Shown here piece after piece: positions 1 to 33,100 of a stretch of 41,958 nucleotides of DNA (position 1 is the first letter of the stretch; every line of letters starts with the position of its first letter). The translations under genes and the position numbers were made by a program. This stretch comes from Macrostomum lignano (lineage: Eukaryota). The notes below the pieces were generated by a model. It did not search any database and was not told where the DNA came from. It saw only the letters and a program-made list of their open reading frames with translations. The stretch lies in contig NIVC01002636.1 in assembly GCA_002269645.1 (NCBI GenBank), forward strand, positions 1 to 41,958, written 5' to 3'.

Positions 1-161
1 AATTTTTTTAAATTCGTAGAAATCACTGTACACACAGCAAGCTTAGTTTTGCTGCTTAGATTCCACTTGAAAGAAAATCCGGCAGCTGATGAGAACCTCT
101 GAGCCAGAAAAACCAGGAACGAGCGTAATTTCATAATGTAAAATGTGCTCGATACTTGCAG

Positions 162-3100
162 GCGGCACCTTCGTGGCCCAGTCGCAGTCCCCGTGCACCG
201 CCCGAGTCACCCGGCTCACCTACTCCGACCGAATCTACGTGCTCGTGCGATCCAAGACCGGCGAGCAGATCGGAGACGTCCAGTACCTCGAGAAGCCGAC
301 AATCGAGGAGGACCTCGTCAAGCTGAAGGACAAGGACCGCGAGAATAAAGAGCTCATCAGCTCGACTGTCGAGGCCGGCATCAAGTGCGAGTTCCTGCGA
401 CACGGCATCGACATCATCGACTCGCCAGGACTGAACGAGAACTCGTCTCTGGACTCGCTGACGCTGGGAGCAATCGACTCGTTTCTACCGATCATCATCT
501 ACGTCATCGACTCGAACACGGGCATCACCGTTGCCGTGAGTTCTAATAAAAATTTCCGACTTCTAACAATGTATTGCAGCTTGCCACTATCGTACAATCT
601 GTGATCATTAATAATAATTGGTGTGAAAGGAATCCAGAGAAGGCCCCATGCAGTATATTTCTGTTAGCAATTCTGTTGACATTTTATTCTTCCACCGAAC
701 TACTAAAACTGCAGGTCCAAAACGACTTAACAAGAATTAAGCAAACGGTGCTGGGAGCTGAGGTGTTCTATCTTGTCACTAAGATGGATGTCTCGAAAGA
801 CACAGAGCAGGAAGCCAATCAAACAGCGCAGGAGATTGAAGAAGAGAAGGCCGAGCGCGTCTTCTCCAAGCTGCAGAGTCTCAAATGCATCAGCCCGAAT
901 GAAACCAAAGAGAAATGCAGCAAGTTTCTTTGCGTCTCGTGTTGGAAAGTAAGGGGATTCCGTCGCAAAAAGGAACTCATGATCAAGAAGAACAAGCTCG
1001 ACCCTGAGGCTCTCAAGGAGATGGAGAATTCAAAGTGGGTCAGACGATTCGAGGAGGTCAAGACGAGAATTCTCAAGTTCGCTCAGGATCAATTTCGAAA
1101 CCTCATCGTGAGTTCTGGTGGCGGCCTGAGGCGCATTCAAAGCGAGATTCTCACACTGTTCATGGACAAGGCCACCAACATCAAAGAGTCGAACTTGCGC
1201 AAGAAGAAGGCGCTCTACCAAATCAAGAGCCTGGAGCAGGAGATCCACAAGCAGTCTAAGAGCATCGTGGAGAAAAATCGAGACGAGCTGTTGAGACAAG
1301 CAGGTCTATTCTTTGCCGAAAGAAGCCGCTCATTCTCGACGAAGTCAGAGCGCTGAAGTACTCGGAGTCAGTGATTACCGCCGATATGTCTCGGAAAGAC
1401 ATTGAGAAGAAGTGCGTCGATGAGATTCGTGCTCTCATCAACGACAGAATAATTGCGTCATTCTGCGACTTCCTCAAAGGTGGCGCTCTGAAGGACATGC
1501 CAAAGAATTCGACGACTTAAGCAGGTTGCGCAGAGTACGAAAGAATGTGAAACAGACGCCCGTACCAGGTGTTAAAGAAGACCCTGCTCGAAGGCTACTC
1601 GTTGTCGTCAAGGACTCAGACCGGTTTTAATGTTATAATAATTCAGGATAAAACGTTGTGAACAGATATAAAAAATCCAGGTCTCGTTTTTCAATCTCCA
1701 CACCGATCCAGGATCAAACTGGAAGGAATATCAGGCAGAAAAGTATCTAGGTAGTAACTTATGTATTTTTCAGACATTGCATTTCTTCCTATGGAAAACG
1801 GTCGAACTAGTTCGCACAGTGTACAATTAATTTTTTGACTTATTTATTTGTAGAGGCAATCGAGCAAAGAAAATCTTGTCGAGTGCTCATCACTCGCTGA
1901 AGAATGGTTTGAAAAGTGCACAGAGAGTTTCTTGACAACATTGCTTCATCGGAGCAACTAGTCGAAAGCTGTATGAAGCTGACCGAGAAGGAGCGATCCG
2001 AGATCAAGACTCTATACCGCGAGTTGCTCGACTGCATATGCTTACGATGGATGTTATCTCCAAGTACAAGTACCGCGGGTTCCGATCGACACGGAAGGAA
2101 ATCTCGGATCCGGAGCTCAAGGTGAGGTGTTCCGAGTTTTGAACGAGAGCGGAGAGCCAGCGCTAGCGGCCAAGAGAATCGTATCCGACGAGCCTAGTCT
2201 TGACGATATCGCAACGGAAGTGTACCACAGCAGGTAAGTTACTATACTTGAGTAGATATAGTACACATATTTCGATCGCATAACTTCTAGTTCTCATAAT
2301 AGCATGAGAAGTTGTTACATTCCAGCGTTCTCAGCATGAAATCTCGTGCACGTAGTCGGCGTGAGGCTCCACAAAAGCAAATCTGATGAGAAGCGATGGA
2401 CAGTAGAGATCTACATGGAGCTGATGTGCTGCGACGCCTGGAATCTGATGCAGCGCCACAGGCTGCCCGTTCGACAGCGCCTGAAGATCGGCTTGGAGCT
2501 GGCGAAGGCCCTTCAGTTCCTTCACTCGAGCGAGCTGATTCACAGAGACGTGAAACTCGCCAACGTCCTCGTAAGCATTTTTTTAGAGTGGACCGACTGT
2601 TTTTATGATTTTAACAGCCCACAAACCCTTACAAACCCTCAGGTGAGTGAGGATTTAAGACAAGTGAAGCTGTCGGACTTCGGACTCATGAAGAGTACAG
2701 GCTTTGTAAACCGAACCTTAGTTGGAACGCCAATCTACCTTGCGCCTGAGCTGGTCCGAGGCGAGAGCTACCACACGAGCGCGGACGTCTTCAGTCTTGG
2801 AATCGCTCTTTGGTATCTTTTGTAAGTTCAAAAAAGATTGCGCGATGTTATTAGGTAAGGGGTAAATTATTATTAGGGGGTAACAGCTCGTAAGGAATTC
2901 TACACTGCCTGAGGGGCCGCTGCAGACAGTTGGAATGCCAGATGTCTTGCAGCGCAGTCGCCCTGGAGAGTCCAAGAGGTGGGTGACCACCTCACCCGGT
3001 AGCCCTGAGGTAGCGGACGAGCAAGCAGAGATTCTCGAGCCATTGATGCGAGATGCCATTGATTTAAATCCACAGCGAAGGCACGGGCAAGCGCCACCCG

Positions 3101-3310
3101 GAGTACGTCGAGATCATGCCCAGTGTCGGAGCCATCCTGCTCGCCGGCGCCCTGGACTGCAGGCCGACGCGGCTGCCCAACATGTCCGACCAGCCCGACC
3201 AGCTGTGGGACCTGATGGAGAGCTGCTGGAGCGGCACCCCAGACTCCAGGCCGACAGCGAAGGCAGCTGTAGAATCCCTGCAGAAAATTGTGGACTCGCT
3301 GGAGTCTTAG
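162..3310 (+). CDS. DSTYK-like: DSTYK/RIPK5-like dynamin-family GTPase-kinase, copy 1. 5' partial, kinase motifs intact, several 1-bp frameshifts as sequenced
   Basis: Exons 162-535, 715-1750, 1854-2233, 2326-2570, 2643-2821, 3076-3310, all with AG/GT ends and the same phases as copy 2. GTPase motifs SPCTARVT, DIIDSPGLNE, VTKMD. Kinase motifs GSGAQGEV, AAK, HRDVKLAN, DFG, GTPIYLAPE, DVFSLG, CWSGTPDSRP. Small deletions relative to copy 2 at about 1323, 1490-1730, 1860-1920, 2017, 2086 and 2326-2345. The P-loop exon lies upstream of the window. Confidence 0.8.
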
Positions 3311-3620
3311 ACGCTCTTACTAGGATGATTTCAATAATGCTAACCATGCATTGCTTACTCAATATTGCTCACTATTCTAACTATACTACTAGCTGATCCA
3401 GTGGCCAAGTTTGGTTAAATTATGAAAAAAATTAGCTCAGTTTTAATTTACAAGGAAAATGGTTGCTTTCTGCCGTTTAGACCCACTTCGCGTACATGTA
3501 AATGACAAGTAGTACAAACGCAGTACAAACTGGAATTCTATAACTCAGTTTTGGTGGAATGGTTTGAAAGCTGTTTCAATTGTGCCACCATAATGGTTTT
3601 TCACAGATATTAGAAGATTA

Positions 3621-3975
3621 AGTATTGGTTTTGTCAGCCTAACTGAGAGTGGAGCCATCCAAAGTGAGAATCCTGCCTACGCTGAATGCGAAGGGCCTGG
3701 CTGCGTCCAGCCTGGTCTATGAGCCATAGACTATAAAGGATAAGCTAGGATTGGCTAGTCATATAGCTCAGAACCTCAGAAGGTATAAAAATAAAATAAT
3801 ACGACACATAGACCAATCGATTCTCACATTGGATGGCTTTTTATCACTTTGCTTGTCCTTTATTGTCTATGGCCCATAGACTAAGGCTGCACGCAGCCGG
3901 GCCCTCGCAGTCAGCGTAGGCAGGATTCTCATTTTGGGTGGCTTTATTCTCAGTTAGGCTGACAAAAGCAATACT
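3621..3975. mobile_element. MITE-like element with about 120-bp imperfect terminal inverted repeats
   Basis: The left end agtattggttttgtcagcctaactgaga...gtctatgagccatagac is the reverse complement of the right end gtctatggcccatagac...tctcagttaggctgacaaaagcaatact. No ORF; target-site duplication not resolved. Confidence 0.8.
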
Positions 3976-5294
3976 ACACAATGATGCAAATTCAAGATGT
4001 TTTTCTAGCTTTCCTTTTCTTTTTCCTTTTCCTGGGTGATTTTTCTACCGTTTAATCAATCTGCCTTGATTGAACTCTATCTACTGCTTAGTTTGCGGTG
4101 CTCAATGAGTTGTGGGCCAAGAGTTCATTTAGACAAATATATGGCCACTAATTTAGTTTACTCAAGTAGCTCAATACCCATTCTGCATGCTTCTCTGACA
4201 GTTGCCAATCAGTAAATTGAAATTTTTATTGAATAAATTGCTACTCTCTCGACTTCTTATATTACGCTCTTCGTATAACTGCATGGTGGGATCGCCATCT
4301 GTCAGTTTCTTATTCATTATTTTTGTTCATTTGGCTTGATTTTTTGCGCAACTTGGAATCCAAATGAGGTAGGCTCAGTGAATGGATTTTGAGCGATTAA
4401 ATTTAAGACAAGCTTATCATTCAGACCGGACCGGATACCTGCTTATCATTCAGAGAAAATCGAAGGAATCACACGGATGACAGAAAGATCTTCATTCTGT
4501 TGCATCTCGAATTCACACGAGCCCGATGATGAACAGTTCATCACTCTAAAATCCTTGGAACTCATCTGAAGCAGTGAGCACTCGGTTATTAAAAGCGATT
4601 AAAAAGCTCAACGTCGCGGACTCAGGAGCCGATCAGTTTTCGATATCCATAGGGCATCCAAGCGAGAAACTGAAGCAAAGGAAAACATTCAGACGAATTA
4701 TCAATTTCTGGTACAGAAACTTTTCCACCGTTAGGTACGTACGCTCTTTATTCAGTTTGCACCCACCAAGTCTCCACCCTGAACCACTGGTCAACTTCTC
4801 TCAGGCGTCAGCCCCAAGTGCCGCAATTCACGCCACGCCTGCGGTTCTCGTCTCAACCATGTGGAGTGATTTGCGTCACAAGGCCCTGGCTTAGGCTGGT
4901 GAGTTTTGGCAAGAGTTGGATTAAAGCTCACATTTGTTGACCAATTTAACTTGGGGTGGACACTTTAACATATTGCCGAGTGTGAGGTTTTTTGTTAAAA
5001 TCAATCGGAGGAGTTTATACTCGTCTTAAAATCTTTAATGATTTTTTCCGGTATAATCTTTAGCTATACTCAATTACATTGAAGTCGCCGCCCTTTGCGC
5101 CAGTAAGTAGCTTCTATCGGACCTTCCTTTGAGAGTGTAAAGAGCCACACAATGTCATGAAACTGCGCCAGGCCTGCGCCAAAAGTCTTCCTCAAGATTT
5201 TTGCGGTGCCTCATTCCGGGGATGCCGCGAAGAATTTCTGTCTTGCTCGCGAAGGACGCACTCGTTATTAAGGCCTTTTCTGAATTGGCACTGT

Positions 5295-5957
5295 AAAACA
5301 AACAACAGCACAAACAAAATACACAGCTCGCATGCAGCGTCCCAGTGAGAGCAGGGCGCGTCAGATGGAGCGCCGCAGATCCTGAGAACGGACAAAGTTC
5401 GCCCATTGGCAGTGTCGGGCGCCCCTGCTTCGCATAGCAGGCAGTCCACATATCGACGGGTCGGGCCTGACCCCGCCTGAACGGACCCTGCAAGGTGAGC
5501 AGCAGGACGTCCTGAACAGGTTGGGGGCAGTAGCCCTCGGCCCGGATCACGTGGCCCGCCAGTTGAAGTCGCCGCCGGCGCAGGATGATGGACGGGCGCC
5601 GCAGCTTGGCCCGATCGTACAGGGCCTCGGTCTCGACGCTCTCGTCAGCTCGAAAGGCCGCACGGAGCAGCCCTGAGTGTGCCGAGTCCAGCTGCCGCTC
5701 TAGCGTAGCCGTCAGCGTCCACGTCTCGGCGTTGTATAGCAGGATGGTTTCGACCATCGCCTACCATAGCCGAGCTGTCTGGCGGTCGGGCAGCGCTTCG
5801 GACTGAGGGACGGCTCGGATCGAACGGAAGGTCGCCCAGGCAAGTCCTCTGCGCCGCCGGAGGACTTTCACCACGTGGAGTACCAGACCGCCGAGGTAGG
5901 TGAACCCAGTCCAGCAGCAGCACGAAGAGGAACGGCGCTCTCCGCAGCGCAACAGCA
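5295..5957 (-). mobile_element. RTE-clade LINE, 3' part (RT thumb and C-terminal region, short-repeat tail), degraded
   Basis: FTYLGG, then MVETILLYNAETWTLTATLERQLDSAHSGLLRAAF...RRRRLQLAGHVIR, typical of the RTE ORF C-terminus. A tgtt/gttt-like tail lies near 5295-5320. Confidence 0.85.
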
Positions 5958-6610
5958 CTGAGGTACCTCGAGGAGCGCGGCTCCCACCCGATTAGCGTCT
6001 GGACCGACTACAGCGGTGATCATCACTCCATCCTGGGCCGGGTCGTCACCAGCGCTGCAGGGAATATCTGCAGCAGCACCCAGGCAGAGCTACAAGCCAT
6101 CCTGCTGGCCATTCAGAATACTAGAGAACATCAATGTATCGACATTTTCACCGACTCCCAGGCGGCCATTCACAGCATCATGGCGGGCCAGCGCAGCAAC
6201 AGCCGGCTCGTATCCGAAATTTGGAACCAGAGTAACGGACACTCCATCCGCATCACCTGGATCCCGGCTCACTGCGGCATCCCCATGAATGAACGCGCAG
6301 ACAGGGCGGCTAGATTGGCGACCGCTGATCAGAGCAATCATGACGCGCCCCTCATGACAGCCAGTGCTTACCTGGATGCCATGCCAAAAGACGAAAACTA
6401 GATCTCGAGCTTTGGGGCCGCAACGCTCGTGGCCAAAGCTCCCAGCCCTCCCGAGGAGACTAGAGGTCCTGGTCAACCAGCTCCGTGCCGGCTGCAGCAA
6501 CCTCGCCGCCGCCACCAGATTCCGGCTCGGCCTGTCCGACTCCGACGTGTGCCCGGACTGCGGAGCACGTGACACCGAGCAACAACATCCTGTTTGGCTG
6601 CCCAAGAGGG
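5958..6610 (+). mobile_element. Fragment of an RNase H-bearing non-LTR retrotransposon (I/Ingi/Loa group-like): RNase H plus C-terminal Cys/His motif
   Basis: Frame from 5958 reads ISVWTD...STQAELQAILLAI...IDIFTDSQAAI...ITWIPAHCGIPMNERADRAAR, which has the D/E/D/H/D RNase HI residues. It is followed by NQLRAGCS...CPDCGARDTE and, after a frameshift, ILFGCP. Confidence 0.85.
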
Positions 6611-7325
6611 TTCGCGGCCCGCCCCGGCGAGCAAGATGCCCTTCTGGCGGACGCGAAAACGACCAGTACAGACTGCAGACGATCGAGCAGCAGCCGGTTG
6701 AAGAGCTTCGCGGTGCAGGACATCAGCGAGATCCCGCGGTGGTCTTCTTTCCGCGTTGTCCCTGCCTTTTCGGGATCGGCACGATGTGCGCGACAGTCCA
6801 CTCGGTGGATGCAGGGGCGCCGGCGAGCACGTGGGAGGCCACACAGCGGAGCCGAGCGCCTTGCCGCCTGGTGATTATCGAGCGAACAGCACAACGTCCT
6901 CCTTGGTGACTGGGCTTGTGCAGAAGTCCTCCTCAGCTGGGAGTGGCGTGTCCAGTGGGAGCGAAAAGCTAGTGGGCAGCGGCGACGCAGGCGCGTTCAC
7001 GATGCCGGCGAAGAAGTCGCGCAATTCATTCCTGCGCTCCTCCGGGGTGTCACCGACCAGATTCAGTGCCACGGGCTTTCTGCACCCGTGGCGTTAGAGT
7101 CCGAAAGGCTGTCCAAACTGCACGGCTCTTCACTTCGGGGCCGGCTGCAGTGATGGTCCGGACGGTGTTGTCGATAGCGGCTTGCTGCTGCTCGTCTAGA
7201 AAGCGCTCAAACGCGTCTTCAGCGTCACTGCCTGAGTGCGCCTGCCTGATGGTCGGGTCGCTCTGCCAGACAGGCTGCGATTTCTGCGCTTGCCGCATCA
7301 GCGGGACCGTCTGCTCCGCAGCAAG
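6610..7325 (-). mobile_element. RTE-clade LINE, upstream part (pre-RT region and start of RT), 5' truncated and frameshifted
   Basis: HRGISLMSCTAKLFNRLLLDRLQSVL (start of RT) preceded by ERRNELRDFFAGIVNAP...PVTKEDV and SRAVWTAFRTLT, spread over different frames. Confidence 0.8.
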
Positions 7326-7534
7326 CGAAGCAGTTAATGTTTTATTACATTTACATGTTGTTATTTGTGTATAACGCTATGCTCGTACTGGAAACCGGCA
7401 CATAAGCAAAGCTCAGCAAAACTTCTGTTTTCTGCTAGCTGCCATCTCCTTATTTTACTTTCTTCAAGATGGACCCTTGGAATCCGGCTCCCTGCGCCCC
7501 TGCGCTTACTGATAAGCAGCTCGTTGCAGCCAGC

Positions 7535-7659
7535 TTCTGTAGCTGGCGCCCCAACCCTTCTGTAGCTGGCGCCCCAACCCTTCTGTAGCTGGCGCCCCAA
7601 CCCTTCTGTAGCTGGCGCCCCAACCCTTCTGTAGCTGGCACCCCAACCCTTCTGTAGCT
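7535..7659. repeat. 23-bp minisatellite, about 5.5 copies
   Basis: Unit ttctgtagctggcgccccaaccc starting at 7535, 7558, 7581, 7604, 7627, with a partial copy at 7650. Confidence 0.95.
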
Positions 7660-8239
7660 CGTCCCTCTTAGAAGATGGGCAGGCCTAACTTCGGTGGGCT
7701 ATTTGTTGGCAAGAGCGTGAACTGTTGCTGCCATGAAATTTTCGACCATCTCTAAGATCTGCACTTGACTGCGTTGGCTGGTTCAAATTCAGTTGCATAA
7801 AATATTTCTTCAATTCAGTATCCAACCTGGAAACAGAGCCAGCTATCAGTTATGCAGTCCTTTGCACAGTCATGATTATGCAAAGTCTCGTTAAGCTTGT
7901 GCATACCAGCTTGAAGGACAACCGGAAACAGCAGTCTTGCTAGATGCTGAGTACATGCATTGTACATGCATACATCGTAGTTAGTGGCAAAGATCCAGAT
8001 CGATTCGTCAGCTCACTGTATGTTAAATACAGCACTAAAATATTATAACAAGAACGTGCTGGAATTACTGTCTTGTTTATCAGCACTAACTGTACCGACA
8101 ACCTCAAAGTGCTGCATCTTTGCTGTACACTGCAGCTCCTATCCTGCCCAGACCGCTAGCAGACCTGATAAAGGAGGCCATGGTCATTTTACAGGACCCG
8201 CAGCTGCATGTTTAGACCGGCAAAGAATGAAAGCTTAAA

Positions 8240-11200
8240 ATGTCGTTCCAAAATGCATCAGCCATGTCGGATGTTGACTCGTTGGAGAAAGAAATTTCTG
8301 AGTTTCACATCAACCGCGACCTGATCAGTGAGCAGCTGGAGAGCACCCAGGCTCTGCTGGATGGCCCCATCGCCAGCAGCCTGTCTGTGGAGTCATCCGA
8401 GGAGCTCAAGCAAAAGCTTCAACTGCCAACACTGACGAAAGCCATCAAGCGGCTGTACCGAGGCAACGAGACCGGCTCCAAGGATGACAGCAAGCCGTGC
8501 ATCATCATTGTTGGGCAAACCAAGTCGGGCAAGAGCTCCTTCATCAATGAGCTTTTAGGTAAGTTGAGAGTTAAACCCAGGATACAGACTGGCAAAATAT
8601 GTTCGCATGAAAATGCAGGTAAAACGGAGGAAGCTGAGTGCTCCCATCTAGAACACACTCAGCATATAGCCCGAACTAATGTGTTGCAGTTAAACATTGA
8701 GACCAGGTTTATGTTTTTTATATACATTGATTCAAGTATTTCCTAGGCGGCACCTTCGTGGCCCAGTCGCAGTCCCCGTGCACCGCCCGAGTCACCCGGC
8801 TCACCTACTCCGACCGAATCTACGTGCTCGTGCGATCCAAGACCGGCGAGCAGATCGGAGACGTCCAGTACCTCGAGAAGCCGACAATCGAGGAGGACCT
8901 CGTCAAGCTGAAGGACGAGGACCGCGAGAATGATGAGCTCATCAGCTCGACTGTCGAGGCCGGCATCAAGTGCGAGTTCCTGCGACACGGCATCGACATA
9001 TCGACTCGCCAGGACTGAACGAGAACTCGTCTCTGGACTCGCTGACGCTGGGGGCGATCGACTCGTTTCTACCGATCATCATCTACGTCATCGACTCGAA
9101 CTCGGGCATCACCATTGCCGTAAGGTCTTTTGTTCACGAGGCACTTTCAAATACCAGTAATAATACAGTGCAAATCAAATTCGCACTTTCTGCGAACTAA
9201 AATACATGAAAAACATTCCTAGGTCCAGAAAGATTTGAAAGCAATTCAACTCCCAGAGATTGGAGCTGAGGTGTTCTATCTAATTACCAAGATGGATGTG
9301 TCCAGAGAAACAGCGGTAGAATCATCAAGCACAACGGAGCAGATTGAAGAAGAGAAGGCCGAGCGCGTCTTCTCTAAGCTGCAGCGTCTCGGCTACATCA
9401 GCCCGAACGAAACCAGAGACACATGCAACAAGTTCCTTTGCGTCTCGTGTTGGGAAGTGAGGCGATTCCGTCGCAAAAAGGAACTCATGATCAAGAAGAA
9501 CAAGCTCGACCCTGAGGCTCTCAAGGAGATGGAGAACTCAAAGTGGGTCAGACGATTCGAGGAGGTCAAGACGAGAATTCTCAAGTTCGCTCAGGATCAA
9601 TTTCGAAACCTCATCGTGAGTTCTGGTGGCGGCCTGAGGCGCATTCAAAGCGAGATTCTCACACTGTTCATGGACAAGGCCACCAACATCAAAGAGTCGA
9701 ACTTGCGCAAGAAGAAGGCGCTCTACCAAATCAAGAGCCTGGAGCAGGAGATCCACCAGCAGTCTAAGAGCATCGTGGAGAAAAATCGAGACGAGCTGTT
9801 GAGACAAGCAGGTCTATTCTTCGCCGAAAGAAAGCCGCTCATTCTCGACGAAGTCAGAGCGCTGAAGTACTCGGAATCGGTGATTTCAGCCGATATGTCT
9901 CAGAAAGACATTGAGAAGAAGTGCGTCGATGAGATTCATGCTCTCATCAACGACAGAATAATTGCGTCATTCTGCGACTTCCTCAAGGATGGGGCTCTGA
10001 AGACTTGTCAAAACGATTTCGATCGTTTGAAGCAGGTAGTCGCAGAGTACGAGAAGGATGTGGAACAGACGCCTGCGTACCAGGTGTTAAAGAAGACGCT
10101 GCTCGTGGGCTACTCGTTGTCTTCGAAGGACTTTATGCTGGGTCCTTTGAGCATTATCCTCAGAAAGATGAAGCACTTCATCAAGCTAATAGTGAAGAAT
10201 CCAGGTCTTGTACTGTCAATGTCTACTCCTGTTGAAGATGAAAGGTGGAAGGAATATCAAGCAGATGTCTATCTTAGTGAGTTTTTCACATCTTTGAAAC
10301 AATGGCTTTTCATGGCGTGCTTTGCAATTCGCTCTTGGGATCTTGATTGTACTGTACTTTTCGTTTGCCTTTCCATGATAAGTTACGTAAAGAAATGATT
10401 GAAGCGCTATTTTTACATGCAAATGTATAATTGCAGGTTCAGTCAGCAAGGAAAATCTCGTTGACTGCCTCATCACTTCACTAAATGGGTGGTTCGAAAA
10501 CCAGCACAGGGAGTTCGTCGAAAAAATCACGTCATCGGAACAGCTGGTCGAAAAATCCATGAAGCTGACCGAGAAGGAGCGATCCGATATCAAGGCTCTT
10601 TACCCGAGAGTCGCTCGACTTCACCTGCTTACGATGGATGTTACCTCAAAGTACAAGTTTCGCGGATTTCGAATTGACACGGAAGGAAAGCTCAGATCTG
10701 CGGCTCAATGCGATATGTTTCGAGTTTTGAATGAGATCGGCGAGCCAACGCTCGCAGCTAAAAGGATAATTTCCTGTGAAACTAGTCTGGACGACATTGC
10801 GACAGAGGTGTACCACAGCAGGTAATGCAGCTTCATGTATTTATGGTAAAAAAGCCTGTTTTGGAATGGTCGTTCGAAGACGTGCTTAAAACGAAACGAG
10901 TCAAAAGTCGAAATTAAAAAGACTTACTCTTATTTGAAGAACTGTCTACTTCGGGCGTCCATTTCAAATAATCTCACAAATGAATAACTTTTGACAGGTC
11001 TTCTTATGACCAGTTTAAAAATAATAAAAATTCACAATTTTTTTCTGAACATTGCAGTCTGCATTATGCATGAATATCGATTTTTATGCCGTATCATTAC
11101 AGCGCTTTTGAGCATCCAAATCTGGTTCATGTAGTCGGCGTGCGGCTGCACAAGAGACGGCCGGAAGAGAACTGGTACACGGTGGAGATCTACATGGAGC

Positions 11201-12422
11201 TGATGCTCTGCGACGCCTGGACTCTGATGCAGCGCTACAGCCTGCCCGTAAAACAGCGCTTGAAGATCGGCTTACGGATTGCGACGTCTCTGCAGTTTCT
11301 TCACTCCAGCGAGCTCGTTCATCAGGATGTTGCACTGAGCAATGTTTGGGTATGAAAACCGACGAGCTATTTTTGTACATGCGTTAAAAGCTTGGCTTTC
11401 TTGCTTTGAAATTGGCTCGAATTATTCTTCTAGGTTAACGAAGATTTGAACAAGGTGAAGTTAGCGCCGTTCGGGATAGTGAAGTGCTACAGCCATAACA
11501 ACCAGCAAACGACCAGCATTCCGGTCTACTTAGCGCCAGAGATTGCCACAGGCAGGTCCAGTCCCGACGCGAGCACTGATGTCTTCAGTCTTGGAATTGC
11601 TCTTTGGTATTTGTTGTGAGTAAGGTGCCTCTTTGGAGGGTAATAAGTCGTAATAATTGATTACACCTGCCCTGATGGCCAGATGTGCAACCGGTACTCA
11701 GCCGCAGCTATTGCGCGGCGCATCTGAAGGCTGCGTACGGCTGTTCAGTCCAATGTATATGATTATGGGGTCGCCACACACCCTCAATTACCCCAGCTAA
11801 TGCTGGCACCCATTTTACAGCTGGGTGAACTGAAGCAATGCAGAGTTAAGTGCCTTGCTCAAGGACACAAATTGTTCCGATTGGAGTCGAGAATCGAACC
11901 CCCGACCTTTCAGTCGTGAGTCAGACGCTCTAACCACTTGGTTAAAACTCCTTCCACTAGGCTACAAACCTCTTCTAGGCAATTTGAAGGGTATGTCACA
12001 CCAAGACTAGCTAAATAAATGCATAGCCTTTTTAAACATCCATCTTCTATGAAAATCTGGAGGTTGTAAGTAATGACCACTAAAAACAGTGCCGGAGGGA
12101 AAACTTCTTGGCCTAACTAAATAGCGTTTGCGTTTGTTGTCCATCCTATTGTGCAGCTCTCTATACACCGGTGCCCCCCATTTACCCCGATTCTTGCAGC
12201 GAAGGCACTGGCAGGCGCCACCCGGAGTACGTTGAGCTCCTGCCCAGCTTCGGGCCAATCCAGCTACCCGGTGCCCAGGACCGCCGACCCAAGCGGCTGC
12301 CGGGCATGCCCGACCAGCTCTGGAGCCTGATGGAGCGCTGTTGGAGCGGCACTCCAGACTCCCGTCCGAGTGCAGAGTCCGCTGCGGACTCCCTGCGGCA
12401 AATTGTGGATTCGCTAAATTAA
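8240..12422 (+). CDS. DSTYK-like: DSTYK/RIPK5-like dynamin-family GTPase fused to a predicted pseudokinase, copy 2 (about 927 aa, 7 exons)
   Basis: Exons 8240-8558, 8747-9119, 9223-10276, 10437-10821, 11103-11349, 11434-11615, 12200-12422. Phases join except for one 1-bp deletion at about 9000 (gacatatcgac vs gacatcatcgac in copy 1). Corrected length is 2784 nt, or 927 aa, close to human DSTYK (929 aa). G1 GQTKSGKS, G2 CTARVT, G3 DSPG, G4 TKMD. The segment YPRVARLHL before the kinase resembles DSTYK PRLARLSL. Confidence 0.85.
11690..11952 (-). mobile_element. tRNA-headed SINE with CORE-like central block, inside intron 6 of copy 2
   Basis: The minus strand reads ggagttttaaccaAGTGGTTAGAGCgtctgactcacgactgaaaggtcgggGGTTCGATTCtcgactcc (A and B boxes, acceptor-stem pairing), then tgtgtccttgagcaaggcacttaac...cagctgtaaaatggg. 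The 3' boundary is approximate. Confidence 0.75.
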
Positions 12423-13757
12423 GTAGTGCCCCTTGCTAGCAGGACTTTTAACTGCTCAACTTCATAGCCATTTCAAAAGAAAATTTTATTTTAGTCATCC
12501 ATCCACTACGTGAAACGGAATAATTGAAACCTTAAAAAAACTGAAAACCTGACATAATTCTAATTGCTTTGTTCCAATTCTATTGATGATTCGAATTTTT
12601 CAAAGTTTAAGCCTATTTGTACATTTACTTAAGTTTGCCACTTCGATGAACTTTTAAGAATGATTCTGGCAAGTAGCCATCATAACATCAGACAAAACGT
12701 TACTAATTCGCTAATATTTGCGTGTTCGATAACTGTTTATTTAGTTTTATATTTTCTTGTCACTCGGATAGAAGCAAAAATTGACGTCAATAAAAAATCA
12801 TGCCATCCTTTCATTACTAATCAGGATAACAAAGCTGAAGGATTCCAAAGGCGCTTTGAGGAATACTTCAATTTTTTGTGCTTTAAAAAATCTTTTTACT
12901 TTGTAATACCTATAAAAATTGTTGAGGTAAAAAGCGGAAACAGACTAGTCAGAGTCAGGCTGCTCAATGCAAGCCAAAAATGAACACAAAATCAATACAG
13001 GTGGAGACCTGCGTATTTAATGTCAGCCGTGTGCCAACCGTGTCTCATCATTACATGCTACTAATGGCAGTTAAACTTGCACAATGGAAGAGAAAACTTC
13101 GCTACGAGTATATAGATCGTGACTAATTTTGTTAGTAATCGACAACAAAAAGTTTAAAAGCTCAGAAACATTTTGTTTAAACGCGATAATTCGATAAGTG
13201 AACTAAGCTTAGGTATATAGTAATTAATGCCTGCCTGCTAAATGTAGATATAGATGATCAATATCGAATAGGCGACTACTATAAACAGAACAGTGAGAAT
13301 ACAGGAAAAGCAGTACAAAACACTGGAGTTTGCTGTCGAAATTATGTGTTGCCGAAAGAAAGTTTAATTAAACTTTAATTTTTTGTTGGTCTATCACTGC
13401 ATTTTAAGGTGAAACAAAAAAAATATTAAATTAAAATTTCAATCTCCGATACTACCTCTTATTAAACGTTTGAATTGATTGCCTAGGGCAATTTTAAAGG
13501 CATATACATTTTTCTATTCAGTACGTAAATGAAGCTTTGGATAGCAAGCAAGCAGACTGCAGGTCCAAGACCTGTTTGACAAAGAAAGCATGCTTTTCCA
13601 CGGTAAATATCATAATAATTGCTAAATTGGGTTTCAAAAGGTAAGGTTTATATGACCAATAACATGATTCAGCATCTAAATATCTAAAACTCTTTTGTAC
13701 GCTTGTACTTGGGCAATGTTACTTACACAAGTCGAGGCAATGTCTATAGCATGACTG

Positions 13758-14547: not shown

Positions 14548-17500
14548 TCACATGCGCAGCTCAGCCATGATGGAGCTGAAATCGGACAGCCTCTGATAAT
14601 CTTCGTCTGGCGGCAGTCCCAGGCCGTAGGGGCAGCCGACACCATCCTGCTCGTCGCTGGCCGTGGTGGCGCCGCCCAGCGCCCGGTCGTCGGTGTACAC
14701 CGGGTTGTCCTCCTCCTGGCGATGGCGGGGCAGCCGCAGCGGGCAGGGCAGCAGCTCCGGCATTACCGACAGGTGGCACACCAGCGACTGAAGGCCGGGC
14801 CACTCCTAGGACAGGCACCAATGCATTATCAATTAATCACCAGGCCTCATCATGTCCTGAGACTGGACCAACAATCCTTAGACTTGACCGTCCGTGCTTA
14901 GACTAGATCACCAGTCCTTAGACTAGATCACCAGTCCTTAGACTAGATCACCAGTCCTTAGACTAGATCAACAGTCCTTAGACTAGATCACCAGTCCTTA
15001 GACTAGATCACCAGTCCTTAGACTAGATCAACAGTCCTTAGACTAGATCACCAGTCCTTAGACTAGATCACCAGTCCTTAGACTAGATCAACAGTCATTA
15101 GACTAGATCACCAGTCCTTAGACTAGATCAACAGTCCTTAGACTAGATCACCAGTCCTTAGACTAGATCACCAGTCCTTAGACTAGATCACCAGTCCTTA
15201 GACTAGATCAACAGTCATTAGACTAGATCACCAGTCCTTAGACTAGATCAACAGTCCTTAGACTAGATCACCAGTCGTTAGACTAGATAACCAGTCCTTA
15301 GACTAGATCAACAGTCCTTAGACTAGATCACCAGTCCTTAGACTAGATAACCAGTCCTTAGACTAGATAACCAGTCCTTAGACTAGATAACCAGTCCTTA
15401 GACTAGATCAACAGTCCTTAGACTAGATCACCAGTCCTTAGACTAGATAACCAGTCCTTAGACTAGATAACCAGTCCTTAGACTAGATAACCAGTCCTTA
15501 GACTAGATCACCAGTCCTTAGACTAGATAACCAGTCCTTAGACTAGATCAACAGTCCTTAGACTAGATCACCAGTCGTTAGACTAGATAACCAGTCCTTA
15601 GACTAGATCAACAGTCCTTAGACTAGATCAACAGTCCTTAGACTAGATCACCAGTCGTTAGACTAGATAACCAGTCCTTAGACTAGATCAACAGTCCTTA
15701 GACTAGATCACCAGTCCACTGCAAACCAAACTAATCATAATAGAAGGCTACAAGCTCCTCACCTTGGCAAGGCCCTTCAACCGGACGCAGCCGCGCTGAG
15801 TCCGCTGGACAAGGTAGTGTGCGAAGCCGCTCGGATTGTCCGACCGGGCAACCCGGACAGACAGCGCGTAGCAGCCGGGATGTGTGCCGCTGTCCCGCAC
15901 TATGAAGGCGCCGACCTCCTCCCGGCTGAGCAGGCCCAGAGCGGTGTCGCGCGGCATGTCGGCCTGGTACCAGTCGGCGTTCACCGGCGACTCCTCGGCG
16001 CCGGCCTCCTCCGAATCCTCAGCGGACAGCGGCGGCGGCTGCGACGACTGCGCTGATGTAGACGAAGCCGACGCTGGCGAAGATCTGTTTGTGATGTCCG
16101 GTGCGCCAAGTTGGCCGCTGCTACGGTTGAAGCCATCCGGAGTGGGGGACACAACCGACTGGGTGGGAGACACAACCGACTGGGTGGGAGACACAACCGA
16201 CTGGGTGGGAGACACAACCGACTGGGTGGGAGACACAACCGACTGGGTGGGAGACACAACCGACTGGGTGGGAGACACAACCGACTGGGTGGGAGACACA
16301 ACCGACTGGGTGGGAGACACAACCGACTGGGTGGGGAGACACAACCGACTGAGGTGGAAAGACACATCAGAGAAAATTCTTCCAGACTCACCGTGCTGGC
16401 AAAGGCGGCGGTGGCGGCGAGGGAGTCGTGTCACCGACAGTACCCGCGGCTGCAGCAGTTGAAGCTCCATTGCCTGCGATGCCTCCGACGGTTGCGAGAT
16501 ATTCGCGGCCTGACCTGCGATTTCGTCGAGGCTGTTGTTGCTGCTGCTGCTGTTGTTGATGCTGCGTGACAGTTGATTCAGGTAAAGTTTGATCCGTAGT
16601 TGACCACTGCATGTTGGCCAACGAGGAGCTGCTGGACACTGACTGGTCCAAGCAGCAGCTGTTGTCCCTTGGTGGCGGCGGCGGTTGCTGCTGCTGCTGC
16701 TGGGAACCAGCCGACGAACTGCCGAGCTGCGAACAGCGTCGAGTCGACTCATCAGCTAGTGGTGGTGGCGTCGTTTGCTGGGCTGCCTCTGAGCGACGGG
16801 CTGGGCGTTGCTGTTGTTGTTGTTGTTGTTGTTGTTGAATTTGCTGCTGCAGTTGCTGCTGTTGCTCCAGCTGTTGTTTTTGTTGCAGTTGCTGCTGCTG
16901 TTGGTACATTTGCAATTGCTGTTGTACCTGCTGCTGTTTATTGATCGGCTGTGGCTGCTGTAGAGGTTGCTTTTTGACGTACTGTTGTTGCTGTTGTTGT
17001 AACAGAATCTGCTGCTGCTGTTTCTGCTGTTGTTGCTTCTGCTGTTGCTGCAGGGTGTAGGCCAGCTTAAAACAGTCGCCAACCAAATTGTTAAGCTCTT
17101 CGGCTAAGTCCGGGTGCACAGTGACGAATGCGTGGCAGTATTGGAGATTGACCTGAGCCTTGGGCTCGCGAGCCATGAAAGCGAACTGGCAGTGGTCCGG
17201 GTTGCAGCTGGCGTAGGAGATTCGCCTCAGCGCGTGCGCCATGTAGACTGTGCGCCCGAACTCGTCGCAGACCTTTAATCGAATATTAATGCGTTTAAAT
17301 TGGCTTTTTATTACTAAATATCCGCATTTGACATGGAGAAACATCTGCTGTCTGACTTGGTGAGAACAGCTGATTAATAATTAATAAGCGTAACATTTCG
17401 ATCTTGTCGGTAATACAGGAAAACCTAAACAGCCATGATTGGACTTTATAAGGGCTAGCGGGAAATTCCCGAGGATAATTCTTATCTCCCAGGCCCGAAT

Positions 17501-27125: not shown

Positions 27126-30100
27126 ATGATGGCCCAACTGGCTGAAGAGGATTTCGCAACCGGATCGGACGAAGTCGACTACGGCAGCTGCGGCGACCCC
27201 AAGCGAAGTGTGCTCAACGCCTCTTCCTGTCAGGTGAAATCTGTGACGGTGTACCTGGACCGGGCTGAGGTCTGTCGCATTGTCCGGCCTCGGGTGCTGG
27301 TTGGCGAATGCGAAGTCATCGTCAGGGATGTGACAGCTGCGATTGACAAGGACTCCATCAGGTGAGATCTTGGCCGTGTTGTCTATGAACCTGGATTGGA
27401 AACTGCTTTTCTATATTTTTTCTAACTTAAATCGTTGTTAATTTAGTCTATAAGGATAGAATAGAGCATATAAAAAGCGTCCAGAGTAATGAATGCCTAG
27501 AAAAATGAGCGCCCAGATAAATGAGCGCCCAGATAAATGAGCGCCCAGATAAATAAGCGCCCAGATAAATGAGCGCCCAGATAAATAAGCGCCCAGATAA
27601 ATGAGCGCTCAGATAAATGAGCGCCCAGATAAATGAACGCCCAGATAAATGAGCGCCCAGATAAATGAACGCCCAGATAAATGAACGCCCAGATAAATGA
27701 GCGCCCAGATAAATGAGCGCCCAGATAAATGAGCGCCCAGATGAATGAGCATCCAGATAAATGAGCGCCCAGATAAATGAGCGCCCAGATGAATGAGCAT
27801 CCGGATAAATGAGCGCCCAGATAAATGAGCGCCCAGATAAATGAGCGCCCAGATGAATGAGCATCCAGATAAATGAGCGCCCAGATGAATGAGCATCCAG
27901 ATAAATGAGCGCCCAGATGAATGAGCATCCAGATAAATGAGCATCCAGATAAATGAGCGCCCAGATAAATGAGCGCCCAGATAAATGAGCGCCCAGATAA
28001 ATGAGCGCCCAGACAAAATGAGCATCCAGATAAATAAGCGCCCAGATAAATGAGCGCCCAGATAAATGAGCGCCCAGATAAATGAGCGCCCAGATAAATG
28101 AACGCCCAGATAAATGAGCGCCCAGATAAATGAACGCCCAGATAAATGAACCCCCAGATAAATGAGCGCCCAGATGAATGAGCATCCAGATAAATGAGCG
28201 CCCAGATAAATGAGCGCCCAGATGAATGAGCATCCAGATAAATGAGCGCCCAGATAAATGAGCGCCCAGATGAATGAGCATCCAGATAAATGAGCATCCA
28301 GATAAATGAGCGCCCAGATAAATGAGCGCCCAGATAAATGAGCGCCCAGATAAATGAGCGCCCAGATAAATGAGCGCCCAGACAAAATGAGCGCCCAGAT
28401 AAATGAGCACCCAGATAAATGAGCGCCCAGATAAATGAGCGCCCAGATAAATGAGCGCCCAGATAAATGAGCGCCCAGATAAATGAGCGCTCAGATAAAT
28501 GAGCGCCCAGATAAATGAGCGCCCAGATAAATGAGCGCCCAGATCAATGAGCGCCCAGATAAATGAGCCCCCAGATAAATGAGCGCCCAGATAAATGAAC
28601 CCCCAGATAAATGAGCGCCCAGATGAATGAGCATCCAGATAAATTAACGCCCAGATAAATGAGCGCCCAGATGAATGAGCATCCAGATAAATGAACGCCC
28701 AGATAAATGAGCGCCCAGATAAATGAACGCCCAGATCAATGAGCACCCAGATAAATGAGCACCCAGATAAATGAGCACCCAGATAAATGAGCACCCAGAT
28801 AAATGAGCACCCAGATAAATGAGCACCCAGATAAATGAACGCCCAGATAAATGAGCGCCCAGATAAATGAGCGCCCAGATAAATGAGCACCCAGATAAAT
28901 GAGCACCCAGATAAATGAGCACCCAGATAAATGAACGCCCAGATAAATGAGCGCCCAGATAAATGAGCGCCCAGATAAATGAACGCCCAGATAAATGAGC
29001 GCCCAGATAAATGAGCGCCCAGATAAATGAGCACCCAGATAAATGAGCACCCAGATAAATGAGCACCCAGATAAATGAGCGCCCAGATAAATGAGCACCC
29101 AGATAAATGAGCACCCAGATAAATGAGCACCCAGATAAATGAACGCCCAGATAAATGAGCGCCCAAATAAATGAGCGCCCAGATAAATGAACGCCCAGAT
29201 AAATGAGCGCCCAGATAAATGAGCGCCCAGATAAATGAGCACCCAGATAAATGAGCACCCAGATAAATGAGCACCCAGATAAATGAGCGCCCAGACAAAT
29301 GACCACTGAGATAGAATGGCGTCTAAGTAGAATGGCGCCTAGAAAAAATGGCGCCCAGATATATTAGCGCCCAGACATAAAAAACCGCGACAACCCGGCC
29401 TGCAGAGTGGAGGTGAAGGGCCCGGCCACCATAGCAGACGTGGCCTACTCGGCCCGCAACAATCGCCAGAGCGAGGACGCGAAGGCCGCTCAAAAGTCGG
29501 CTGCTCAGAAAGCCCTGCAGGAGGAGCAGCGGGCCCTGGAGAGCCTGACCAATCGGCAGGCCAGGCTGCGGAAACAGCGCGACGTGTTGAACAGCTTCGC
29601 CGATATGCTAATCAGGAAGCCGGAGCCGTCCGTGGCCGCAGTGGCCGCTGCCGCCGCCGAGATCAAAGCGACTGTCGGGGTGAGCGATTTACCTGCTCTC
29701 TGCGATTCTCATAGGGGCGATTCTCATTGGGGCGATTCTCATTGGAGTGATTCTCATTGGGGCGATTCTCATAGTAGCGATTCTCATAGTAGCGATTCTC
29801 ATAGTAGCGATTCTCATAGTAGCGATTCTCATAGTAGCGATTCTCATAGTAGCGATTCTCATAGTAGCGATTCTCATAGTAGCGATTCTCATAGTAGCGA
29901 TTCTCATAGTAGCGATTCTCATAGTAGCGATTCTCATAGTAGCGATTCTCATAGTAGCGATTCTCATAGTAGCGATTCTCATAGTAGCGATTCTCATAGT
30001 AGCGATTCTCATAGTAGCGATTCTCATAGTAGCGATTCTCATAGTAGCGATTCTCATAGTAGCGATTCTCATAGTAGCGATTCTCATAGTAGCGATTCTC

Positions 30101-33100
30101 ATAGTAGCGATTCTTATAGTAGCGATTCTCATAGTAGCGATTCTCATAGTAGCGATTCTCATAGTAGCGATTCTCATAGTAGCGATTCTCATAGTAGCGA
30201 TTCTCATAGTAGCGATTCTCATAGTAGCGATTCTCATAGTAGCGATTCTCATAGTAGCGATTCTCATAGTAGCGATTCTCATTGTAGCGATTCTCATAGT
30301 AGCGATTCTCATTGGAGTGATTCTCATTGGGGCGATTCTCATTGGGGCGATTCTCATTGGGGCGATTCTCATAGTAGCGATTCTCATAGTAGCGATTCTC
30401 ATAGTAGCGATTCTCATAGTAGCGATTCTTATAGTAGCGATTCTCATAGTAGCGATTCTCATAGTAGCGATTCTCATAGTAGCGATTCTCATAGTAGCGA
30501 TTCTCATAGTAGCGATTCTTATAGTAGCGATTCTCATAGTAGCGATTCTCATAGTAGCGATTCTCATAGTAGCGATTCTCATAGTAGCGATTTTCATTAG
30601 GGCGATTCTCATTAGGGCGATTCTCATTGGGGCGATTCTCATTGGGGCGATTCTCATAGTTGCGATTCTCATTGGGGCGATTCTCATAGTAGCAATTCTC
30701 ATTGTAGCGATTCTCATTGGGACGATTCTCATAGTAGCGATTCTCATAGTAGCGATTCTCATAGTAGCGATTCTCATAGTAGCGATTCTCATAGTAGCGA
30801 TTCTCATAGGGGCGATTCTCATTAGGGCGATTCTCATTGGAGTGATTCTCATTGGGGTGATTCTTAAATGGGCGATTCTTATTGGGGCAATTCCAAGTTC
30901 AGGACTCGAACTTCATACGACGATTCATTCTAGGGCGATTTTTATCTAGAAAACTTCATAAGGGGATTAAGAGAAATTGGGAGATTTTAAATGGAGTTGG
31001 ATTGGACTTCATTGGAGTGGATGAATTTCGACTTTTCTAGGAAAGGAAGCTCTTGTCATTTTTTATTTGTTCGGGTTTTTAATGCAGTGTCTTTCTGAAA
31101 GTTTATCCCTCTTTTCCATTGATTTCTACGAATAGAAGGCCTGTATAAATCCCCGGCCTAGATTTGAATTCATGAAAATCCATAAATAAAATCCCTGCCT
31201 TAAAATCCCAAAAAATGATTCCTCAGAACCCAAAAAATTCCGACATGCTTAATGCTTCCTTGCCAATTTTTTTATTATTTGCTTTTCACACCGACGCCGT
31301 GACCCCAGCTGACCCCGGCATCAGCTGTGGCGTTTAGGGAAGTCGGGACACGAAGAGAGAGTGAAAGTTGGGAACTCTGCTGATCCATGACTTTGGCGCT
31401 TCATAACAAACTCGATTGAGGCACTAAACAGAGTGTGCACTTTACGGTGGGGCACAGAACTGCCAAGAGAGCAAAATTCTAAAGGAGACATTCTACGGGG
31501 GCTGGAGACATTCTACAGGGTAGGAGGCATTCTACAGATGTAGGAGACATTCTACAGGGGGACGAGAAATTCTACAGAGCTTAGAGACATTCTACAGGGG
31601 TAGGGGACATTATACAGGGGTACAAGATATTCTACAGAGGTTAGAGACATTCTACGGGGGCTGGAGACATTCTACGGGGGCTGGAGACATTCTACAGGGT
31701 AGGAGGCATTCTACAGATGTAGGAGACATTTTAAAGGGGTACGAGACATTCTACAGAGGTTAGAGACATTCTACAGTGGTTAGAGACATGTTAGAGACAT
31801 TCTACAGTGGTTAGAGACTTTCTACAGTGGTTAGAGACTTTCTACAGAGGTCAGAGACATTCTACAGGAGTAGGGGACATCCTACAGGGGTACGAGACAT
31901 TCTACAGGAGTAGGGGACATCCTACAGGGGTACGAGACATTCTACAGGAGTAGGGGACATCCTACAGGGGTACGAGACATTCTACAGAGGTCAGAGACAT
32001 CCTACAGGGGTACGAGACATTCTACAGAGGTCAGAGACATTCTACAGTGATTTGAGACATTCTACAGTGGTTAGAGACATTCCACAGAGGTCAGAGACAT
32101 TCTATAGGAGTAGGAGACTTTCTACAGTGGTTAGAGACATTTTACAGAGGTTAGAGACATGTTAGAGACATTCTACAGTGGTTAGAGACTTTCTACAGTG
32201 GTTAGAGACTTTCTACAGAGGTCAGAGACATTCTACAGAGGTTAGAGACATTCTACAGAGGTTAGAGACATTTTACAGAGGTTAGAGACATTCTACAGAG
32301 GTTAGAGACATTCTACAGAGGTTAGAGACATTCTCTACACGGGGTAGGAGACATTCTACACGGGGTAGGATATATTTATCATGCGAAAACCCAAGGGGCA
32401 GAGTAGTTCGGCCGTAAACGCGTCTGACTCTCGCGCCCCAGGACCCCTGGTTCGATTTCTATTTAATTTAGGGTTTGTGCACGAAAAAATTGTCCAGGGG
32501 TTGTTGTGCGATTCACACACATCAGGTCCAGCCCCCAAGACACAGACAGTGTACATGCCTGATGATGAGAAAGTCAGGGCTGCTGTACACCCTGTGTGAG
32601 CGAGTGTATGGAAGAGTGAGCGCCTGCATACAGATCGGCGAAGATTTATTTATACGTCCAAATCAAGCGGGATAACGCCACGTCTATGTAAAAAAACGAT
32701 ATTTATTAATAAACGCAGGATGGAGCTACGCAGCCGCAGGCGCCGGCCGCAGCTTCGATTGACGCCTTCGATCCGAAGCACATGGACACCTTGAGCAGCT
32801 TCTTCAACCTGTACGACAGGCAGGCTGGCCGGCTGGATGACGACCTGCTTGACACTCGCGTGGCCATCCAGAAGAAGGAGGAGGCCGTCAAAGCTTTGGA
32901 GAAGCAGCTGCGGATATCGAGGCCAGATATAACGAGATGCAGAGCCGGTGAGGCTGGCTGGCAGAGGGGATGCAATTGGTGCCAGGTATTGTAGCTTGAG
33001 ATTCTTAGAGGTGTGCAATCGGTGCCAGGTTTTGTAGCTTTGAGGTGTGCAATCGGTACCAGGTATCGTAGCTTGAGATTCTTAGAGGTGTGCAATCGGT

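Follow-up and report, generated by a model that had tools for sequence, protein, structure and literature searches.

The DNA that we analysed, referred to below as the window, is a stretch of 41,958 nucleotides from the flatworm Macrostomum lignano (contig NIVC01002636.1, positions 1 to 41,958). It contains two genes of the DSTYK family, copy 1 and copy 2, both located on the forward strand and collinear when the window is compared with itself by blastn. At the DNA level, the copies are 97% identical in the first exon that they share and 92% identical in the following one, and the value drops to approximately 78-79% in the exons of the kinase. Copy 1 is the annotated gene BOX15_Mlig021099g2 (PAA72236.1, here P0016; 929 amino acids), and copy 2 matches the UniProt entry A0A1I8G7C2; both proteins pre-exist in the databases as uncharacterised entries. 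The copies are separate genes about 4.9 kb apart, with copy 1 ending at its own stop codon (3308-3310) and copy 2 beginning at its own start codon (8240). The window corresponds to the distal half of a DSTYK-family gene cluster of M. lignano.

Copies 1 and 2 have a common structure of seven exons, which agree in length and phase. The exon model was derived from the intact paralogue P0002 on locus L001, likewise from P0007 on L002 and P0016 on L003, and projected onto the window; the exon lengths in the intact paralogues (374, 1054, 385, 247, 179 or 182, and 226 or 235 nt) agree with those of the copies. A sequence-only reading of this DNA had described two collinear paralogues with identical exon phases, which the blastn comparison and the exon projection both bear out, and the coordinates that it gave for the motifs of the two copies are exact throughout. 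It had not reported that exon 1 of copy 1, with the P-loop, is outside the window, about 320 bp upstream, nor had it reported any frame-breaking indels, of which there are about 19 in copy 1 and one in copy 2 (at position 9000).

Within the window, copy 1 starts with exon 2 (162-535), which holds the GTPase core with the G3 motif DSPG (419-430) and aligns without indels to exon 2 of P0002 and P0016, bounded by AG and GT. Exon 3 (715-1750) encodes the G4 motif TKMD (778-789) and the helical stalk; it is garbled from position 1314 and shows 11 indel events relative to P0002. Exon 4 (1853-2233) covers the linker and the N-lobe of the kinase, including the Gly loop GSGAQG (2106-2123) and the AAK lysine (2163-2177). 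It is followed by exon 5 (2326-2570) with HRDVKLAN (2541-2564), exon 6 (2643-2821) with DFG (2676-2684) and GTPIYLAPE (2724-2750), and exon 7 (3076-3310), which encodes the C-lobe with an in-frame 9-bp repeat (SDQPDQ), ends in the stop codon TAG and is identical to P0016 at the protein level.

In copy 2, exon 1 (8240-8558) starts with the ATG and carries the P-loop GQTKSGKS (8513-8536), exon 2 (8747-9119) contains the GTPase core with DSPG (9003-9014) and a 1-bp deletion at 9000, and exon 3 (9223-10276) encodes TKMD (9286-9297) and the helical stalk, is free of indels and has the same 1054 nt as in the paralogues. The kinase domain is encoded by exon 4 (10437-10821), with RSAAQC (10694-10711) and the retained AAK lysine (10751-10765), exon 5 (11103-11349), with HQDVALSN (11320-11343), exon 6 (11434-11615), with PFG (11467-11475), SIPVYLAPE (11515-11541) and three additional nucleotides in frame, and exon 7 (12200-12422), which ends in the stop codon TAA (12420-12422) and is 100% identical to the C-terminus of P0001, the other protein of the copy 2 type. 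Degenerate retrotransposon remnants are located between the copies (5150-7100). They include an RNase H fragment on the forward strand (6180-6401; Pfam RNase_H, E=2.3e-6), which is the sole match in a Pfam scan of the open reading frames between the genes. The homeologous locus L001 holds a copy to which the remnants are 98% identical, a higher value than that of the flanking DNA (~94%).

Both conceptual proteins match the Pfam families Dynamin_N and Pkinase/PK_Tyr_Ser-Thr (Dynamin_N scores are 64.2 bits for copy 2 and 72 bits for P0016, with a cut-off of 27), and the best database matches of both genes are all DSTYK-like proteins of M. lignano. A profile with P0016 and the copy 2-type protein P0001 aligned end to end with DSTYK from Merluccius (hhalign probability 100%, E=1.3e-65, 844 columns). 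An exhaustive phmmer search with P0002 revealed full-length relatives across Metazoa, the best of which are from hemichordates, amphioxus, a brachiopod, a nemertean, a sea cucumber, a scallop and a bee; those whose names were looked up are called DSTYK, DSTYK-like or RIPK5. With Pfam, Dynamin_N was detected in the hemichordate, amphioxus, brachiopod, nemertean and flatworm members, and was below detection in the fish, sea cucumber and scallop members. A sequence search of the PDB returned kinase domains as the sole matches. For a test of the fold, the intact paralogue P0002 was modelled, standing in for the proteins of the cluster. The AlphaFold2 model (predicted local distance difference test score 78.8) has long helices over residues 306-655, and its top PDB match in Foldseek is the bacterial dynamin-like protein BDLP (2j69_A; E=8.7e-15, 721 columns). 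Copies 1 and 2 are DSTYK-family proteins with a BDLP-like dynamin GTPase, a helical stalk and a C-terminal ‘dusty’ kinase; the family assignment of the sequence-only reading is upheld by Pfam and by the alignment of the flatworm profile with fish DSTYK.

DSTYK resembles the flatworm genes in its size of about 930 amino acids and in its layout, with a long N-terminal region preceding the C-terminal ‘dusty’ kinase. However, the fish protein has GQDCAARY in place of GQTKSGKS and VPCP in place of DSPG, and gives no Dynamin_N match, whereas the flatworm genes retain canonical GTPase motifs. When Merluccius DSTYK (P0066) is compared with the flatworm profile, the P-loop, G3 and G4 motifs are lost. 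The flatworm system differs further in that M. lignano has a multi-gene cluster, and in that copy 2 is devoid of the catalytic kinase residues. Judged from the one vertebrate orthologue that was checked, from fish, vertebrate DSTYK appears to carry in its N-terminal region a dynamin-like GTPase domain of the BDLP type that has degenerated. The N-terminus of DSTYK has been called a non-catalytic, poorly conserved domain (PMC8636471), and we found no paper in the searched literature that describes the N-terminus of vertebrate DSTYK as a degenerate dynamin-like GTPase.

BDLP (PDB 2j69), from the mitofusin class of the dynamin superfamily, likewise has a Dynamin_N domain with G1, G3 and G4 motifs, and a predicted GTPase followed by long helical bundles. 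In contrast to BDLP, the flatworm proteins have a fused protein kinase, and the structural match is at 16% identity with a root-mean-square deviation of 33 Å, indicating either a different conformation or a loose model. The ROCO proteins (LRRK1/2) also combine a GTPase and a kinase in one polypeptide, which suggests, as a working analogy, that the kinase could be regulated by nucleotide gating. It is an analogy of design only; the ROCO GTPase is a Ras-like Roc-COR module and not dynamin-like, and the kinases belong to unrelated subfamilies.

In the window sequence, the reading frame of copy 1 is broken by about 19 indels, which are located in exons 3-5 at positions 1323-2340. The same locus in assembly Mlig_3_7 (L003, NIVC01001103.1), which is 98.9% identical to window positions 3-8092, encodes the intact P0016 of 929 amino acids. 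The differences are concentrated in a patch of low-quality consensus (1314-2348) with ~50 mismatches and 24 indels relative to L003, mostly 1-bp deletions. In the 5.7 kb outside the patch, 12 single-base indels and 7 substitutions separate the window from L003 (~2 and ~1 per kb, respectively). In a three-way alignment that included the homeologous locus L001, 22 of the 25 deletions in the window fall on bases that vary between L003 and L001, where 29% is expected by chance; an example is GTG[T/C]CTC, which became GTG-CTC. At 30 of the 56 positions where the window mismatches L003, it carries the base of L001. The ML2-derived proteins P0006 and P0008 are of the copy 1 type and have an L001-like patch. 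Because the deletions are located on haplotype-variant bases, we interpret the frameshifts in copy 1 as consensus artefacts, most likely errors introduced where two diverged haplotypes were collapsed.

The kinase motifs of copy 1 are complete (GxGxxG, the VAIK lysine, HRD, DFG and APE), as in an active DSTYK; those of copy 2 are not. Since the deletions show the signature of collapsed haplotypes and not of decay, copy 1 is most likely an intact gene for a catalytically competent kinase. The sequence-only reading had voiced the worry that copy 1 might be a true pseudogene, which is dispelled by the intact 929-residue frame at the same locus in Mlig_3_7 and by the artefact-like behaviour of the frameshifts. 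The candidate explanation of a heavily decayed pseudogene was rejected on the same two grounds. Collapsed haplotypes in this assembly create false frameshifts, and multi-copy genes may carry them.

In copy 2, the Gly loop, the Arg of HRD, the catalytic-loop Lys, the Asp of DFG (changed to Pro at 11467-11469, GAC to CCG) and the GT of the P+1 loop have been replaced. Retained are the VAIK lysine, the glutamate of helix αC, APE and the GTPase motifs G1, G3 and G4. The residues that support the kinase fold are still conserved (APE, the DxxSxGxxLWY block, HPxY and CW..P..RP), and the kinase region scores 86.5 bits with PK_Tyr_Ser-Thr and 74.6 bits with Pkinase in Pfam. Copy 2 thus combines a recognisable kinase fold with the absence of the DFG Asp, which is what is expected of a pseudokinase. 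The earlier assignment of copy 2 as a pseudokinase holds, on the basis of the lost DFG Asp, Gly loop, HRD Arg and catalytic-loop Lys, with the kinase fold and the open frame kept. The accompanying claim that the Gly loop has been replaced is correct for the window, which has RSAAQC, but the change of the first Gly to Arg is absent from P0001, the other copy 2-type protein, which has GSAAQC. Because RSAAQC, HQDVALSN and PFG stand in the place of the catalytic motifs, copy 2 is predicted to be a degenerate member of the DSTYK family by descent, and not an active DSTYK.

The changes are not evenly distributed. Seven canonical relatives from three phyla show no variation at 59 kinase positions; copy 2 departs from them at 13 of the 59, and 11 of these changes are located in the Gly loop (4), the catalytic loop (3), DFG (1) and the P+1 loop (3). 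None of the 61 invariant positions in the N-terminal part has changed. This pattern looks like a targeted loss of catalysis with retention of the fold, and suggests a pseudokinase and not a pseudogene in decay. It is common for duplicated kinases to give rise to pseudokinases. In JAK JH1/JH2, RAF/KSR, HER2/HER3 and the plant tandem kinases, as in the flatworm pair, a kinase has been duplicated and one copy is without the DFG Asp, the Gly loop and the catalytic-loop Lys, while the fold is constrained. However, JAK and the plant tandem kinases have both domains in one polypeptide, whereas the flatworm domains are encoded by separate neighbouring genes. Moreover, the flatworm partners each carry their own GTPase. 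No DSTYK pseudokinase paralogue is described in the searched literature, consistent with the earlier remark that no DSTYK pair of this kind is known, and our searches for papers that link DSTYK to dynamin, a GTPase domain, a pseudokinase or Macrostomum gave no relevant result.

With a single base restored, copy 2 has an open reading frame of 927 codons, with AG/GT at all six introns. Its kinase exons were said in the sequence-only reading to have no stop or frameshift, and this holds over the whole of 10437-12422. Exons 1 and 4-7 together (~1.36 kb), in which synonymous divergence (dS) is ~0.9-1.5, show no stop, frame-breaking indel or lost splice site. In simulations, exons 4-7 remained free of stops after 100 random substitutions in 2% of the runs, and after 200 in 0.05%; the two copies differ at ~260 positions in these exons. 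Using the method of Nei and Gojobori, we compared copy 2 with P0016 by region. The values of dS, dN (non-synonymous divergence) and dN/dS are 1.47, 0.337 and 0.23 in exon 1, 0.30, 0.109 and 0.36 in exon 3, and 0.92, 0.22 and 0.24 in the kinase domain. For exon 2 they are 0.02, 0.018 and 0.83, based on 2 synonymous and 5 non-synonymous differences.

When P0007 serves as the outgroup, the branch leading to copy 2 has a non-synonymous length of ~0.187, compared with ~0.034 for that of copy 1. Polarised site by site, 32 synonymous and 65 non-synonymous changes fall on the branch of copy 2, and 32 and 23, respectively, on that of copy 1 (Fisher p=0.0035). Along its branch, copy 2 has a dN/dS of about 0.4-0.6, and copy 1 has one of about 0.07-0.2. 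The ratio for copy 2 is still lower than expected under neutrality (p=0.017, omega of about 0.6). The kinase exons of copy 2 have evolved non-neutrally, and the dN/dS check on these exons that had been proposed along with the pseudokinase assignment thus has an outcome in its favour.

Exon 2, which encodes the GTPase core, behaves differently from the rest of the gene throughout the cluster. Its dS is 0.02-0.09 among all cluster paralogues, including P0007, the remaining exons of which are saturated; for copy 2 against the other paralogues it is 0.02-0.06. The DNA of exon 2 is 97-99% identical among at least five paralogues (window 162-535 and 8747-9119; L001 10782-11155; L002 11273-11646 and 7016-6639), although in other regions their synonymous sites are saturated, and the similarity ends at the splice sites. 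From this distribution, exon 2 is homogenised among the paralogues by exon-limited gene conversion, or else is under unusually strong constraint at the nucleotide level. Because the concerted evolution spans the family, the likeness of the GTPase regions does not set this pair apart. The sequence-only reading was correct in that the GTPase region is near-identical between the copies, but the likeness reflects conversion across the paralogues and is not pair-specific. As a result, one paralogue has almost the same G domain as another, and the domains should be nearly interchangeable, which fits heterotypic pairing and is not evidence for it. As judged from the dS of about 0.9-1.5 outside the converted exons, copy 2 is an old tandem duplicate.

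In both L001 and L002, an active gene of the P0007 type is arranged head to head with a gene of the copy 1 type. A further paralogue of 877 amino acids, termed C-type, follows in tandem after the P0007-type gene (L002 15851-20902; L001 2107-1, on the minus strand). The C-type protein has kept Dynamin_N, and its kinase region has decayed to HGN and DLG and has no Pfam kinase match. Its sequence marks it as a second, older pseudokinase paralogue derived from DSTYK. The order in the cluster is C-type pseudokinase, P0007-type, copy 1-type and copy 2, with a pseudokinase at each outer end. We considered copy 2 as the positional counterpart of the C-type gene and rejected this possibility, as the C-type protein is ~25-35% identical to copy 2, as it is to the other paralogues. 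Since the C-type protein is no closer to copy 2 than to the others, catalysis was lost twice in the cluster.

At the locus of P0010, another paralogue type (L004), no DSTYK-like neighbour was called. Three segments resembling exon 2, the GTPase core, are present there (889-1326, 10365-10802 and 15445-15825). Two of these have identical match statistics and are ~9.5 kb apart, which suggests a local segmental duplication. The nemertean Tubulanus polymorphus has two tandem DSTYK-like genes of 936 amino acids (L005 525-4585 and 10001-14057), both with Dynamin_N and a kinase domain.

The order of copy 1, retrotransposon remnant and copy 2 is supported by two overlapping, independent sources. The match with L003 continues for ~1 kb beyond the repeated retrotransposon element and ends at window position 8092, where a scaffold gap of 2486 N starts, 150 bp before the ATG of copy 2. 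The ML2-derived model P0011 is collinear with window positions 6453-11352, including the locus-specific stretches 7225-7311 and 8202-8329. The lack of copy 2 in L003 was considered as evidence against the tandem order, and rejected because it is at 8092 that the gap in L003 begins.

We favour the interpretation, to which we assign a probability of roughly 0.6, that copy 1 is an active GTPase-kinase of the DSTYK type, that copy 2 is a paralogue which has been maintained, with a GTPase that looks functional and a catalytically dead kinase fold, and that the frameshifts are artefacts. An old tandem duplication would have produced copy 2, the kinase of which became a pseudokinase while the fold, the GTPase motifs, the splice sites and the reading frame were retained. 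Copy 2 would be expressed and act as a non-catalytic, GTPase-bearing scaffold or regulator. Dynamin-superfamily proteins pair through the G domain, and copy 2 may pair with active paralogues in the same manner. Going by the way in which dynamins and pseudokinases behave in general, copy 2 could regulate or co-assemble with copy 1, although we regard this as unlikely; the role of decoy or sensor, which the sequence-only reading had also put forward, is likewise conjecture. We speculate, with little confidence, that the cluster encodes GTPase-gated hetero-oligomers of kinases and pseudokinases, held together by a dynamin-type G-domain interface of which the exon is kept identical by conversion. 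The pseudokinase would allosterically tune or sense its partner, in an arrangement that evolved twice, with the C-type gene and with copy 2.

Several observations weigh against a maintained copy 2, and most of them fit its main rival, in which copy 2 is a dead or dying gene, a functionless unitary pseudogene left by the expansion of the family. The dN/dS of about 0.4-0.6 on its branch indicates strongly relaxed constraint, with a non-synonymous rate 2.8 times that of copy 1, and neutrality is rejected at no better than p=0.017. Copy 2 is missing from the NCBI proteins of Mlig_3_7, where the assembly gap of 2486 N is located exactly at this place, and no copy 2 is found at the homeologous locus L001 within 10 kb downstream. 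Part of the conservation in the N-terminal region stems from gene conversion and not from selection on copy 2. Finally, the 1-bp deletion at 9000 breaks the frame in the GTPase exon just before the G3 motif DSPG. However, the three sources differ at this position: a base is missing in the window (GACAT-ATCGAC), the P0011 protein has ...GIDINRLAR..., implying an extra base (GACATCAATCGAC), and the P0001 protein has GIDIIDSPG, in frame. The ML2 DNA state was deduced from the two protein models, and an undeleted sequence would read GACATCATCGAC or GACATAATCGAC. Because single-base indels between the window and L003 occur at ~2 per kb outside the patch, one indel in the 2.8-kb coding sequence of copy 2 is within the assembly error rate, and the frameshift is probably artefactual. 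A pseudogene is also difficult to reconcile with ~1.36 kb of intact sequence in exons 1 and 4-7 at a dS of ~0.9-1.5, with a stop-free frame that the simulations make very unlikely under neutrality, and with changes that are targeted to catalytic elements instead of evenly spread. Any inactivation must have been very recent, and we consider this explanation unlikely.

Somewhat less probable to us is a copy 2 that functions independently of copy 1, mainly by means of its GTPase and stalk and perhaps as a scaffold or in the remodelling of membranes, with the kinase as a structural appendage and the adjacency as a footprint of the duplication. The intact G1, G3 and G4 motifs and the unaltered state of all 61 invariant N-terminal positions would be expected in this case. 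The tandem DSTYK duplicates of Tubulanus, both of which match Pkinase and show no sign of a pseudokinase, and the C-type protein, in which Dynamin_N is kept and almost all kinase signal is gone, point in the same direction. The conserved kinase-fold residues and the score of 86.5 bits with PK_Tyr_Ser-Thr suggest, however, that the kinase domain of copy 2 is still under selection, and on present data independent function is not really separable from the interpretation that we favour. We consider it highly improbable that copy 2, or its tandem arrangement with copy 1, arose in the assembly as a chimera of near-identical paralogues joined via the retrotransposon or exons 2-3. The window demonstrably contains a patch of collapsed haplotypes, further copies of the retrotransposon at 5150-7100 exist elsewhere, the paralogues are near-identical in exons 2-3, and the gap in Mlig_3_7 is at the expected start of copy 2. 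Nevertheless, L003 and P0011 both extend through sequence that is not repeated, as described above, and the diverged exons 1 and 4-7 of copy 2 recur in P0001 at ~95-100% identity.

In the flatworm and other invertebrate orthologues, the N-terminal region of DSTYK is predicted to be a dynamin-like GTPase of the BDLP type with intact nucleotide-binding motifs. DSTYK is a human disease gene, associated with urinary-tract malformation and with the spastic paraplegia SPG23. If the pseudokinase truly partners with its active neighbour, M. lignano would offer a transgenic, regenerating model for the communication between GTPase and kinase in DSTYK. If not, the two genes amount to a further lineage-specific duplicate, and a fairly ordinary one of the kinase/pseudokinase kind, in a genome that is highly duplicated.

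Repeats are present both within and downstream of copy 2. Intron 6 contains a dispersed repeat of ~300 bp (11641-11949), which is also found at L001 6483-6766, three times in L002 and at L003 22949-23255, with 80-90% identity. Between window positions 13756 and 41940, at least 15 distinct minisatellite arrays with unrelated units of 12-21 bp occupy most of the 29 kb downstream of copy 2; examples are 27476-29375, with 119 copies of a 16-bp unit, and 29702-30852, with a 15-bp unit. These minisatellites plausibly caused the scaffold gap in Mlig_3_7.

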